Origin: Orbicella franksi
Lineage: Eukaryota
Direction: 5' to 3'
DNA: 64,000 nt
NCBI GenBank assembly: GCA_964199315.1
Contig: OZ116700.1
Coordinates: 14,570,001-14,634,000 of the forward strand
In this document: positions 52,483-58,785 of the stretch, one piece after another
Numbering within the stretch: the first letter of the stretch is position 1
Layout: the number at the start of each line of letters is the position of its first letter
Translations under genes and position numbers: made by a program
Notes under the pieces: generated by a model
The model's input: only the letters and a program-made list of their open reading frames with translations
Told to the model about the DNA's origin: nothing
Databases searched by the model: none

Positions 52483-54340
52483 TTATATGTAAACCAAAAA
52501 TAATTGCACATTCGTTTCATTGCTTAATTTAATCTCTTCCTACTCAACAAGACTGTGCGCTCCCTGTGGTTCCAAGCCTTATGGACCCTTACGTATTAGG
52601 ATAGAAATTTTCCTACCCCTAGCCCCTAAAGTGGGATGACAGCATTGCATGACGAACAAAGAATGAACCGCTGCAAGCAAGGATTCAAGCAGCAATAGAT
52701 CAAACGATGATCAAACGTAATAATTCGGTGTAGTGAGAAGCAAGCAACTATCTACAAATCACTTAGCCATTGTTGACTTAGCTGCAGTGGTGATCGCATG
52801 TGTCGAAAGAGGGTCATAGATTCATGGTATTCGACCATTGAATAAGTTGACAGTTGGCGATGTACATCGGACGTTGTGTAAATAAAAGCAAACTTCTGCT
52901 TTATGTTTGACGAATGGTGACGGAAACACGTCAAATCAGCTTTAGGACCTGCCTTTTACAGGAAAGATGGTTAGAACATTTCGAAATTATCAGCTTTGTG
53001 TCTATTTCCACTTAATATAGCTCAAGACATGTGGCACGTGCTAAAATATGTCTAACCTGTAAATTGAAATTTGATGACGGATGGTCAAACATCTGCATTT
53101 TTAATGTACTTTGAAAAGCTCTCGTGTCGCTCACAATCATTTGCCTAGAGAAATTTTTGCAAGAATCTGTAGACCATCCTGCGATTCAACCACCAGAAGC
53201 TTAATCCATTTGAAGGTTTCGCACATGGTGAAAATCAATTATTTTTACGAAGTACTTTTAAGTGAATGGAATACATGTCTTCGAAATTTAATTATTTTGC
53301 ACCCAACAAAAACCGCAGCATTCCTTAAAATCAACCCAGTACACAATTAAACATTGCACAAAAATATTTGAGTGTTTTAAAGACGGAAGAATGATGTGGT
53401 TTTGCATGCGAGGGTCAAACTTGTTTAACAAAATGATGCGTCAAATGACGATTTTAACAGAATTTGGTAATTTGCATATTTCTTTGAAATAAAAGGATAT
53501 TTTGCCAAAAAAAGCTATCCAGTAGTTTTTGTCACATACCATAGCCTATCTACCATAGGAATATGAGCGAAATCAAATTTTTGACCCTTGCTGCGAAATT
53601 AAGAATTTGTCTGATTTTTACAGGCAGGCACTCTTAAAAGCTAATTTTGATTCTTACAGGGTTTGACTTTTTGCCATGATAAAGTCAACTAATGGCTTTT
53701 CAACTTGAACTTGTAACAAGATTATAACTTAACCTTATACGCCATTCACACCAATTTTTTGTATTCCATTTGTGCTGCATGCAATTCTTTTCTTCTGACA
53801 AGACAAGTGCTTGCAGGAAATATTTTTTCAAAATCACTCCTCCCCCCTCAAGAGTAAACTGGTCAGCCCCTTAGAACTGTCATCAATCAAGTAATTACAG
53901 TAATTCACATTTGTTGTTGTTTCGCTCCAACTTGTTACAATGCCAGTGCCTCTTTTAGAATCATTGGAACACTTGTATCTTGTGTATTTATACTGGCATT
54001 GTAATTCTTTTTTTCACTTGACAGCCAGAGATTAGCATAACTAAGAACTGCTCTATCAATGCAAAGAAAGAGCAACAAGGAAACATTAACACAAAACATA
54101 TGTCAGTGTTAAAAATCATGTTGCATTCTTCTGTAGTAACATATTACTCTTGATCAAGTTTGAGGAGAGTGCAGTGTTGATTACACACATGCACTTCATT
54201 GAATTTTTTAATGGCAGAATAAGACAAGTTTCCAGAGCAGAAGAGAATAGTGTTATCATCCACATCCCTCAAGTCTGCACTGGCTATTTCAGGATCACAA
54301 AGACCGTAACCTTTTCCTTGAATGTCCACAACCATTAGTT

Positions 54341-56960
54341 GTTTTATCTTTTTTTTTACTCTTAACAAAAAAGATCAGCAACTAAATTCTTTGTTAACAG
54401 TAAATTCGTTACGCCTACAGCTGAACAAGGGATAAAAGAAGCCAGTCTAAAAGTCTAAAATACAACTTATTTTTTGCCTTCTGTTTAATGTTACCAAAGA
54501 CACTAGACTCGCCATTTTCCAATACAAAATAATTTATCACATTCTACCCACAAATTCAACACTTTTTAGAGATTCAATCAAGGAACATGATAAATGTCAC
54601 CTCTGTGGAGAAAGACAAATGTTAGCCCATCTTTTTGTTACCTGTTCTGAAGCTCAGCTTTTTTGGTCTCTCTTTACTAATTAGTGGAGCTCCAAAAACG
54701 GAGATAGGATCACTGTCGATGAAAATGAGATAATATATGGCGTGACAGATAACTTCGCTTGTCATCTTGGCTTAAACCTCTCCATGATTATGGCCATATA
54801 TTATTTATATACTGCCTCAAGAAAAGAAGAAGAGTTTTATTTTGATGCTTTCTTGGGGATTTTGACAAACAAAATTAAAATTGAGAGACAAATCTAAATC
54901 ACAAATTAATATGCGAGAAAGCCTCCTATTGTAGCTAACCCCCAACATGAAAGATATTAACAAATTGTAATTTAAGATATTAACAAATTGTGACCTTCCA
55001 TAGGAAAACATGTCCTGTTGAAAACAGCGTTTTTAGGGCGTTTGAAACGCCTCGCAAACGGGGTTTGACAGCGTTTCAAACGCTTTGCAAACTCTTTTCA
55101 AACGCTTTGCAAACCCTTCGCGAACTCCTTACAAATGCTTTTCAAACCCTTTGCAAACGCCTGTCAAACGGTTTGCAAAGCGTGTCAAACGCTTCTCAAA
55201 CCCTTTGCAAATACTTCACAAACCCTTTGCTAACTTTTCGCAAACCCTTTGCAAACGCTTTGCAAACCCTTGGCAAACGCTTCTCTTGAGCACCGGCGGA
55301 ACCAGTCCGCAAGGAATAAAACGTGCTTAGCAATGATTAGTTTTCAATACCTTACGGTCAGTAATTAACTGTTCTTTTAACATAAGTAGCAAGATGAAAA
55401 GATTTATATATAGTTATTCAGTATGATGGGAAAGTGCAGAAATGTATTTAGAATGCACGAGCACGCGATGTGAGTTTGTGTTTTGGTCGCCTGTGTTTAC
55501 GATTTATCAGCTGATTTGACGTGAATGAAAACTTCTCGCCGGTCATACAAGCAAATGTTCGCTGCAGTTTTCTCGCAGACACAAAGAGAAAGGTAAAAGA
55601 TGAATTTTAAATTTTACATCTTAAATATTATTTGAGCATTTGTTGAAATTTCAATCCAAACATTACGCGGTGAACACAAACAACTGACAAGCCGAAATTT
55701 TCATAATAGCTCGACGGTCGTGATTGTTTACGCTTGACAGATTTCGCGAATGAACCTTGTCATGAATTCGCTACATCAAACAACCGGGTGTTATTTTTAA
55801 AATGTACTACATAAATATGTTTACAAATTCGGAAATAAGCTTGTGCCTTGCCAAAATTGTCAAAGTATGGCTGCGGTATTTACCCGGAATGTTTACTAAG
55901 CTTATCTATTGTGTCTTCTTTTTGTGCTGTGTTTGTGTCGGGAAAACATCAACTCATTCTTTGCTGGAGGAAGAAAATCTTCTGTGTCTGTGATTTGGAA
56001 TGGAATGTGTAACGGCAGTGTGTTTGTGCCGAAAGGGTTTCGATGTTCTTGAAGAGATAATTTTAAAATGAAGGGATTTCGTGTTAATATGCAGCTAGTG
56101 TAATTTTACTACCACAAGAAATGGAAGTAGTGAAGGCTTGATCATTGAGGTGAGCTTGTAACTTTAGCTAGATGATTGTCACAATTAAGTAGATCAACAA
56201 ACCGAAAGTTTGATTAATATACGAATTGTTGCATGTATGAATGACCTTATCGTTCAATTTTTATCACTCCTGTCAGCCTGATTATCGTCAGGTTCTGTCT
56301 CGCTCATTAGCGAGACATTTTTAGGGCCAGAATTTCGACCGTGTCTCGCTCAGAAGTTTTGTACGGGATCACTATTAGAAGCAAACGACCAATTGTCAAA
56401 ACCACCGAAGCTGAATAAAAACGCTCCGAAGGGTTTAATGTACTGAGCTTTTATGAAAATTATAACTAAGATGGCTTTTATTAGCATACAAACCCTTAGG
56501 CAAACGATTTCAAACTCTTTGCAAACCCTTCGCAAAGCCCATGCACACGCTTTGCAAACCCTTTGCAAACTCTTTTTAAACGCTTTACAAACTCCTTTCA
56601 AAAGGTTTACAAACTCCTTTCAAACGCTTTACAAACTCCTTCCAAACCCTTTCAAATGCTTTAGAAACTCCTTCCAAACCCTTTCAAACCCTTTTAAAAG
56701 CGTTTCAAACTTTTTCCAAACCCTTTGCAAACACCTTGCAAACGCCATTTGAGGGCGTTTGAAACACCATTTGGCCCAAATTGAAATGTTCGATAAGACC
56801 TGTTTTCCTATGGAAGGTCATAATTGTAAATAATGTTAGTACTGTAAGTTTTGTTAGTATTGTTAAATTGTAAGTTACTTCAGAATTGTAAGTAGTAGGT
56901 AATTTTTGTATGTAATGTAATATAAGATATTGTAATGAAAACAATTCTTTTGAAAAAAAA
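54341..56960 (+). mobile_element. 3' fragment of a Tx1/L1-like LINE (C-terminal Cys/His domain, 3' UTR, A-tail), split by a TIR element
   Basis: TKDTRLAIFQYKII..ILPTN...CHLCGERQMLAHLFVTC...FW...LNLS...YLY. The AT-rich UTR resumes after 56820 and ends in TGAAAAAAAAA at ~56960. Confidence 0.8.
54991..56820. mobile_element. Non-autonomous TIR element, 1830 bp
   Basis: Perfect 20-bp TIRs TGACCTTCCATAGGAAAACA at 54991-55010 and 56801-56820 (24 bp with 1 mismatch). Subterminal (CAAAC-x-CTTT)n arrays at ~55070-55285 and ~56505-56745. No long ORF. Confidence 0.88.
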
Positions 56961-57474
56961 ATGGAACTACAAACAAATGTTGTTTAGAAGATCCCATGCG
57001 CCGATTTTCCATCGAGTTATATTTGCAAGACTGGTACATGTTTACAAACCAGGAAGAAAGAAGATATTAGAAACACAAAAGCCTTTAAAAAAGGTTCCAA
57101 CATTGCTTCACATGCCTGGTTGAACGACCATTCCATCGACTTTGGCAATGCACACGTGATTGAAAAGGGAAATTTCCGTGTTAGAAAAGCTTTGGAATCC
57201 TGCCACACAGCAATTATGATCCATGCTGACAGTAATGTGAAACAATTACCAAGACAATATTCAATTTCATTTTGAACTTTACATTAGCATTTTCACTAGC
57301 ACACAAGCATTTTTATTGTTTTTATTATAATTTTGTTTTTTCACACTTTTATTAGTATATATTTTAACGTTCACGCTTTCTATCTATTACTCGTTAAAGA
57401 CCACAGACTGGTAGTCGACAGCTTGTTTTAAACAAATTTTTAACCAGAGATCGTTTTTCTATTTTTCCAAATAA
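56961..57474 (+). mobile_element. Penelope-like element C, 3' fragment (GIY-YIG tail + pLTR)
   Basis: YICKTGTCLQTRKKE...GSNIASHAWLNDHSIDF...R..LES. Degenerate hammerhead-like TTAAAGACCACAGACTGGTAGTCGACAGC near 57395-57425. Confidence 0.8.
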
Positions 57475-57870
57475 AACCATTAGTTTTTTGCCCGACTTTA
57501 CATAGGTGTAATGCGCAAAGGTCTCCGCTTTCAGACTGACTTCACTTCGGTCACGGTAGATATCTCCTGTATTGTTAACATACTTGGATAATTGGGTGGT
57601 GCTATCCAAAAAATTTTCCACAGTGACACACTCTCTATTAAGTTTGCCAAAGTACCCTTTCGTGTAGGCGAATGTCACCAAACTCCTGTAGCTTCTCCAA
57701 TTCTAAGTTCATAGCAAAATTATGGTTCAGCGAATTCATTTGAACAGCTTTACGTTCAATGTTGTGAATTTGATTTTCCTTCACCTTTTTCAATACATAC
57801 TTTCCATTCTGAATTCCGGACAGTGCATTTGCCTCGTAAGCATTGCGAAAGGTCCCACTTGCAAATTTTT

Positions 57871-58091
57871 AGTTTTTACATTTTATTTGTAGCTTAATTG
57901 TATTATATAGCGTATTTAATTCTTAGGATTTTAACTTTTAGGATTTAGGATTTTAGGTTTTTAAAGGATTAGGATTTTAATTTTAGGATTTTAAACTTAG
58001 GATTTTAATTTTAAAGTATTGTAAAGCGCCATGGACAATTAGTGGAAAATGGCGCTGTATAAATGTATATTTATTAATTTATTTTATTTTT
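57871..58091 (+). mobile_element. L2/CR1-type LINE 3' tail
   Basis: (TTTTAGGAT)n tract, then TGTAAA-GCGCCAT...ATGGCGC-TGTATAAAT stem-loop and a (TTTA)n tail. It interrupts the alpha-kinase between RLSLQK and FASG. Confidence 0.7.
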
Positions 58092-58785
58092 GTAACGAAA
58101 GCCTTACTTGAAATTGTTCGAGCCATCTCATGTCCGTGACAGAAAACTCTTCAAGTGTCAAAGTAACAACATCAGTTTTAGGAGTGATTAGCTTGCTAAG
58201 CTTTAACATTACACTTAATGGCATTGATGCAGGCATCATGGATGGTTGGGGGATTTTTACCTTCTATTCCCACAGACTTGCTTGCAGGTACTGATTGAGG
58301 ATATTTGTGAAGCCAGTCATGCTGTTGATTCGAGGCATCTGGACGTGCAATACCAGGTTCGCTAAATATGATGTGAAGCACTTTCCAATTCTTTATTTGG
58401 CTTGTCTCAGTGAAGGATGGTCCCCTCTCACCAGCAAGCAAATCACACTGCATATCGGTGAGCTGGAAATGCTTTTTGCATGCTGCTTTAATATTTTGGG
58501 GCATAGCTTCGCATTTGAGGGGAACCATGGTCAGTGGACCGATACCTAAATATTTTTGGCACGTGCCCTTAACAGATGAGGAAAGGTGTTGCACTGTTAG
58601 AAATTCCAATCCAGTTGACTCTGCTTTGTTGTTCCCTGTTCGTTTCTTGCCTACTTTCGCTCTAAATGCATCCCAATCCTGCTTTTTCTGCTTGGACATT
58701 TTGGCACATGGCATAAACACAAACCTAAAGTGCATTGTAGGATATATAAAGTTGAAATGTCTGATTGGCTATGGGCTCTGTGGGC

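Follow-up and report, generated by a model that had tools for sequence, protein, structure and literature searches.

The window analysed here is a stretch of 64,000 nucleotides from Orbicella franksi (contig OZ116700.1, positions 14,570,001 to 14,634,000; 62% A+T). On its minus strand lies the last coding exon of an alpha-kinase, which is split in two by an insert of 3134 bp. The insert stands between two copies of an 11-bp sequence, AACCATTAGTT, for which the window holds exactly two matches, against an average of 0.10 in shuffled sequences. From left to right, it contains a short filler, a 5'-truncated long interspersed nuclear element (LINE) that is itself divided by a DNA transposon with terminal inverted repeats (TIRs), and a 5'-truncated Penelope-like element in the same orientation as the LINE (Table 1). 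Our tentative reading of this composite is that three transposon insertions are stacked at one site and that the LINE and the Penelope-like copy arrived separately.

An earlier note on this DNA had described the 11-bp duplication bounding a 3134-bp insert, and its description is borne out. The duplication is possibly longer, as a 15-bp repeat with one mismatch can be drawn, the left copy then reaching 54344. The same note had claimed that removal of the insert plus one copy restores alpha-kinase codons. When the flanks are joined in this way, they give an open minus-strand frame through ...YVKSGKKLMVVDIQGKG..., and the Pfam Alpha_kinase matches of the two exon halves overlap (profile positions 85-139 versus 135-185), the overlap representing the duplicated codons. 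The empty allele, for which the note had proposed a search, is found in relatives: contigs L085 (91% DNA identity) and L086 (85%), from related coral metagenomes, are uninterrupted at this site and read base for base as predicted, and the site is likewise uninterrupted in the homologous proteins P0121, P0125, and P0126. Searches of the genome (497 Mb of assembly) with the DNA flanking the insert in the kinase revealed no paralogue.

A further contig, L084, comes from an independent metagenome sample and has the same left junction; therefore, this junction is no assembly artefact. Compared with window positions 54341-54470, L084 differs by one T in the T-run of the filler, a small indel, and a few substitutions, and the locus is thus polymorphic in sequence between samples. 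Compared with L085, L086, and P0121, the kinase exon has changes of its own at 57640-57800 (minus strand): it lacks 2 nt after ...QEFGD, which shifts the frame, and a further 30 nt. Judged from its sequence, this alpha-kinase copy would be a pseudogene even without the insertion.

Table 1. Coordinates of the interrupted alpha-kinase exon and of the components of the insert (positions are those of the window)
Feature	Positions	Strand	Evidence or remark
Alpha-kinase last coding exon, downstream half (LMVVDIQGKG...LKLDQE, then stop)	54147..54340	-	Pfam Alpha_kinase positions 135-185, E 2.4e-10; aligns with L085/L086 and P0121
Target-site duplication, left copy, 11 bp	54330..54340		Empty orthologous sites have one copy
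Filler at 5' junction, 31 bp	54341..54371	+	LINE homology begins only at 54372 in about 40 copies
5'-truncated LINE: C-terminal remnant of open reading frame (ORF) 2 with zf-RVT (two in-frame stops) and first part of 3' untranslated region (UTR)	54372..54991	+	About 92% identity to at least 40 genomic copies; zf-RVT E 5.9e-8
Non-autonomous TIR DNA transposon, 1828 bp, splitting the LINE 3'UTR	54992..56819		Imperfect terminal inverted repeats, direct-repeat families, LINE alignment
Remaining LINE 3'UTR, subfamily-specific end, A9 tail at 56953-56961	56820..56961	+	Alignment to LINE copies
Ambiguous T at LINE/Penelope junction: filler base, or Penelope C (CpG) mutated to T	56962..56962	+	Other copies have ...CCCGC before GGAACTAC
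5'-truncated Penelope-like element: C-terminal GIY-YIG remnant and 3'UTR, with the family's short 3' terminus	56963..57472	+	88-93% identity to at least 50 genomic copies
Two A's between Penelope end and right duplication	57473..57474	+	Absent from empty target and Penelope RNA
Target-site duplication, right copy, 11 bp	57475..57485		Exact repeat search
Alpha-kinase exon, upstream half	57475..57690	-	Pfam Alpha_kinase positions 85-139, E 4.1e-10

An intact genomic copy of the LINE family, L038, matches zf-RVT (E 1.3e-6) as well as RVT_1 (E 5.3e-28). In canonical copies, an AATAAA signal and poly(A) form the 3' end, and the tails of the family are heterogeneous. In copy L065, the interrupted tail motif of the window copy recurs, followed by poly(A) and then by an 18-bp duplication of its own. 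Because the subfamily tail and the A-run are common to these two copies, the A9 run of the window is the true 3' end of a LINE RNA, and the earlier view of a 5'-truncated LINE running to its own A-tail is confirmed. The resolved target-site duplications of the family measure 9-18 bp, and 8/8 start with A (3/8 with AA). At eight other LINE junctions, the 5' filler is 0-5 nt long, versus 31 bp in the window. In two groups of LINE copies, the 3' flanks are identical past the poly(A): L043, L052, L053, and L067 (contig C5, 26.5-27.2 Mb) and L038, L046, and L047 (contig C3, 10.47-10.70 Mb); in the latter group, about 15 bp of common sequence lie between the poly(A) and a second A-run. These groups are either segmental duplications or LINE 3' transductions.

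The transposon that splits the LINE 3'UTR was overlooked in the earlier reading of the insert. It has two subterminal arrays, each of about 20 units of 11 bp, and the core of the unit, GTTTGCAAAC, is a palindrome. Canonical LINE copies have about 20 bp where the TIR element sits and do not contain the element, which inserted after the LINE; the repeat that flanks it is AATTGT (6 bp, possibly 8 with mismatches). Nine other genomic copies are 92-97% identical at the right end and match to the last base of the query, 56819, a boundary that was set by the terminal inverted repeat and the LINE alignment, the query itself ending there.

At its left end, the insert does not open directly in LINE coding sequence, as the earlier note had it. 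The filler comes first, and it is unlike the canonical sequence found upstream of 54372 in about 40 genomic LINE copies. The 31-mer has no second match in the genome at up to 3 mismatches. Its first five bases, GTTTT, echo the target beyond the duplication, and positions 54355-54369 repeat, exactly and in inverted form, the canonical LINE sequence found 18-32 nt inside the truncated LINE, a 15-nt match that was reached by 0/300 shuffles. The piece with the T-run is the inverted complement of 54367-54375, that is, a second short fold-back. From these matches, the filler is best read as the product of two snap-backs of the complementary DNA (cDNA) end, which would have copied the adjacent LINE. 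Penelope sequence at 54341-54370, a possibility that the earlier note had raised, was rejected as the source of the filler: the 31-mer is unrepeated in the genome and so is not family sequence, and a comparison with 2 kb of the Penelope-like element gave no significant match.

The Penelope part is 510 bp long and includes an open frame at 56988-57272 that encodes the GIY-YIG remnant. All of the other copies (at least 50) carry element sequence upstream of the position that corresponds to 56963. The search for the junction between A-tail and Penelope that the earlier note had suggested was run, and the junction is unique in the assembly, with no second copy in a similarity search across it or in a search that allowed up to 2 mismatches in 25 nt. 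No repeats of 6 bp or more flank 56963-57472. The duplication around the LINE part only, which would have spoken for a secondary insertion, was not detected, and the note's statement that no separate duplication surrounds the LINE can be extended to the Penelope part. On the right, the note was correct in placing a co-oriented GIY-YIG 3' end; this end does not, however, abut the right duplication, since the two A's intervene.

What the right-hand junction means depends on how other members of this Penelope family end. The family ORF (copy L005 and 13 homologues) keeps the motifs VYKIPC..C..YIGETGR..R..EH..N. The GIY-YIG domain was missed by Pfam and PDB sequence searches, and comparison of folds was therefore needed: an AlphaFold model of the endonuclease domain has the I-TevI catalytic domain as its best match (Z 6.3, 81/94 residues), followed by T4 EndoII and UvrC. 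On the basis of the motifs and this model, the family ORF is predicted to join a C-terminal GIY-YIG endonuclease with a reverse transcriptase. Matches to RVT_1 are only partial among the sequences that were rescanned (P0010, 29.8 bits with a cut-off of 29.6; P0002, 26.6 bits; and the L005 fragment, 16.4 bits). The best named relatives of the Penelope-family proteins are from the stony corals Oculina patagonica, Montipora, and Orbicella. Two ORF remnants of other Penelope-like families are also present in the window, at 13139-14050 (plus strand) and 7275-7958 (minus strand), with 35% and 27% amino acid identity, respectively, to the family studied here.

Copies of this family end either at ...CCAAAT (the short end) or 29 nt further on (the tail end). 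Inverted arms were found in L002, L006, L008, L009, L011, L012, L025, L028, and L083, and all of the cleanly resolved inverted pairs (5/5) combine one short and one tail-bearing end. L083, a truncated inverted pair, was found by searching for contigs that encode P0001; the corresponding search for P0002 and for two junction-spanning ORFs of the window found no encoding record. The duplications of resolved insertions are 6, 9, 9, 11, and 11 bp long, another of about 10 bp was read by eye in L003/L007, and L025 is an insertion without duplication. Resolved short-end junctions are flush in 6/6 cases. GTT occurs outside the 3' end, at a distance given as 8-11 or 9-13 nt, in about 15/30 short ends and 11/17 tail ends, versus 10-15% expected, and it lies outside the duplication in 6/6 resolved insertions. 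Together, loci L002-L030 and genome-wide pattern matches give a palindromic target pattern, AAC-N12-GTT, cleaved immediately inside the half-sites. At many short ends, the sequence is CCAAAC and then ATT, which recalls the ATT cleavage preference of the anole element. Rfam detected no hammerhead ribozyme in window positions 53500-58500, and the region holds no pseudo-long terminal repeat (pseudo-LTR). Among the copies read, all less than full length, no direct pseudo-LTR was seen. The window copy ends at the short site, and therefore the Penelope enzyme made the right-hand junction.

Nowhere in the genome does an A-run come after a Penelope short end. At one other locus (G000:C5:19429380-19429414, minus strand), a short end is followed by AAAACATTAG, compared with AAAACCATTAG in the window, and 11/12 nt are the same, a likeness that is too strong for chance. 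When the terminal 37-68 nt of the element were used as queries, similarity searches did not recover this locus, and so the piece in it is short. One possibility is a tiny progeny copy of the window element that reads 12 nt into the window flank; another is a hint that the extra A's came from a source RNA.

According to the reading that we tentatively prefer, a 5'-truncated, polyadenylated, L1-like LINE would have entered the last coding exon of the alpha-kinase by target-primed reverse transcription. Its endonuclease would have cut just before AACC, a T-ended primer would have paired with the poly(A) tail, and the products would be the 11-bp duplication and the 5' fold-back filler. The Penelope enzyme, starting reverse transcription at its canonical short site, would then have placed a 510-bp, 5'-truncated Penelope copy in the last bases of the LINE poly(A) tail, in the same orientation, leaving A9 on the left and AA on the right and no duplication of its own. 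Later still, the 1.83-kb TIR transposon would have split the LINE 3'UTR. Such a nesting, in which a Penelope fragment sits in the poly(A) tail that an ordinary LINE insertion had brought, was left out of the earlier reading. The boundaries, the empty site, the 3' ends of the families, and the unique junction are observed; that the LINE and Penelope steps were separate and came in this order, we infer from several features. The outer duplication looks LINE-made, because it starts with AA and because the LINE duplications all start with A and span a range that includes its length. If the two A's are a remnant of the tail, the right Penelope junction is flush and lies 10 nt from GTT, which is the usual geometry of the family. 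The position of GTT inside the window duplication, and outside it in the resolved Penelope cases, is as expected if a LINE made the duplication. Jumps of the template onto poly(A) RNA are at best rare, given that 0 of about 45 other Penelope 5' junctions examined abut poly(A), and nesting is frequent at this locus, given that the TIR element sits inside the same LINE.

Several observations weigh against separate insertions. The Penelope part is not flanked by a separate duplication, whereas 5/6 cleanly resolved insertions of the family have one of 6-11 bp; Penelope insertion without duplication is also documented elsewhere (PMC3846280). Coincidences are needed, since the copy must have hit the last bases of a tail of about 11 bp, in the same orientation and at nearly the same time. 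When divergence is counted column by column against other copies, the two parts are equal both in private differences (31/501 for the Penelope part versus 45/719 for the LINE part) and in strictly unique ones (17/501 versus 22/719), which separates the readings only weakly given a sampling error of about 1% per part. The double fold-back in a filler of 31 bp is unlike the short fillers of other LINE copies and fits Penelope self-priming (PMC3846280). Finally, an intermediate allele with the LINE and without Penelope was not found among three related contigs and six proteins. The main competitor, which we consider a real if slightly less probable possibility, is a single retro-insertion driven by the Penelope enzyme. 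The Penelope ribonucleoprotein would have nicked the kinase exon, begun reverse transcription at the short site of Penelope RNA, and, after 510 nt, switched to the 3' end of a polyadenylated LINE RNA, of which some 760 nt would have been copied; the cDNA end would then have folded back twice and joined the upstream end of the target, the TIR element arriving later. This would explain the flush position and the shared orientation of the two parts without coincidence, as well as their equal divergence, their unique junction, and their enclosure in one duplication with none around either alone. An authentic LINE RNA 3' end with its subfamily tail stands exactly at the junction, next to a co-oriented and 5'-truncated Penelope part that ends at a start site specific to the Penelope reverse transcriptase (PMC11167929). 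Moreover, a duplication of 11 bp is within the 6-11 bp of the family and is bounded by AAC and GTT, the family target half-sites, and both the fold-back filler and the capture of foreign sequence in one duplication have counterparts in Penelope self-priming and in Adineta vaga, respectively (PMC3846280). However, one duplication around the composite is equally compatible with a LINE-only insertion, and neither Penelope RNA nor the target supplies a template for the A's at 57473-57474, whereas six resolved short ends are flush. The duplication resembles those made by LINEs in starting with AA, it includes the GTT that is usually outside, and its half-sites are spaced 5 nt apart rather than about 12. 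It is also one case only, with no counterpart among the other 5' junctions. Thus, of the earlier proposal that Penelope-primed reverse transcription switched to a LINE RNA at its poly(A), the compatible anatomy and the single duplication stand, and the two A's, the AA start, and the enclosed GTT fit sequential insertions better. We consider sequential insertions slightly likelier than the single event, the factors for and against roughly cancelling each other; for that reason, the weighing depends on how frequently Penelope jumps to LINE RNA. As a rough estimate, the two readings would be at parity if the Penelope enzyme made such a jump in about 1 in 3,000-10,000 insertions.

Three further explanations place the fusion or the order of events elsewhere. 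A LINE-A9-Penelope fusion could have formed at another locus, been transcribed as one RNA, and been copied here by the Penelope enzyme, as the earlier note had offered as its second option. Penelope enzymes can mobilise unrelated sequence upstream of 3' cis-sequences (PMC3846280), and this would account for the single duplication and the end at the short site, but the absence of a second copy of the junction from the assembly does not support it, and the source locus would itself need a sequential or a jump event and so would only add steps; we regard it as improbable. Still less credible is a LINE 3' transduction, in which a LINE upstream of a Penelope fragment would have been read through its own poly(A) signal and both would have been retroposed by the LINE machinery. 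The LINE-like outer duplication and the heterogeneous LINE tails agree with it. Nevertheless, in place of a second poly(A) tail, the 3' end has only AA, neither AATAAA nor ATTAAA occurs in the 40 nt before 57472, no source locus was found in the assembly, no short end of the family is followed by an A-run, and the end would have to coincide by chance with the canonical Penelope terminus. Mobilisation of polyadenylated Penelope RNAs by the LINE machinery was likewise rejected, because A-runs were not seen after any other short end. Lastly, an older Penelope could have made the duplication, with a later LINE insertion removing the 5' side of the Penelope as far as the left duplication. In favour is a resemblance between the start of the filler and that of the Penelope tail, 7/8 positions being identical over the first 8 nt of each. 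Against it, the 31-mer is unique and lacks a significant match to the 2 kb of the element that were compared, the tail start is always preceded by the element's own T (21 cases versus 0), a deletion would have had to end only a few bases from the duplication, the LINE has no duplication, and LINE fold-back copies explain the filler better. This order of events is very hard to sustain.

If the two parts were inserted separately, the site is an unremarkable stack of transposons within a dead gene. If they arose in a single event, it would be a retro-chimera across classes that was driven by Penelope and not by the LINE, and it would represent a natural footprint of a Penelope reverse transcriptase jumping onto a polyadenylated RNA. 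This would imply that Penelope makes chimeric retrocopies as L1 does. Template jumping has been proposed for the tandem and inverted structures of Penelope and for its capture of host genes, with scant direct evidence, and in the literature searched no Penelope/LINE template-switch chimera was described.

Known systems offer partial parallels to both readings. As in ordinary nested transposons, one element sits inside the tail of another, and the TIR element sits inside the LINE 3'UTR; unlike in these, the inner Penelope part lacks a separate duplication and comes to within two bases of the end of the outer element. The chimeras that LINEs form by template switching (U6/L1 in mammals; WEIRD, Mg-SINE, and MGL in Magnaporthe [PMC2104539]) are likewise co-oriented, head-to-tail retrocopies within one short duplication, with a 5' partner that has an intact RNA 3' end and a 3' partner that is 5' truncated. 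In those chimeras, however, the 3' partner and driver is a LINE with poly(A), and recurrences are many, whereas here it would be a Penelope without poly(A), the LINE would be what was captured, and there is one case. In the Penelope capture of Adineta vaga, for which template jumps and self-priming have been invoked, foreign sequence and a Penelope terminus also share one duplication (8-10 bp), and an empty site is the proof (PMC3846280). The captured DNA there lies between two pseudo-LTRs and has kept its introns, whereas here only a 3' Penelope fragment is present, and the poly(A) tail at the end of the captured piece points to a processed RNA or an inserted copy. With respect to canonical Penelope anatomy (PMC8557442), the coral family has the tail and the 5'-truncated inverted arm, while the window copy has neither and is followed by two extra A's. 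A biochemical parallel is the Penelope-like element of the anole, for which two internal reverse transcription start sites are used in vitro, without homology, on both cut strands (PMC11167929). Under either reading, the survey of this coral Penelope family yields testable rules, namely, two start sites 29 nt apart, one of each per inverted pair, and a GTT that tends to lie 9-13 nt outside each 3' end, and these rules match the in vitro work on the anole element.

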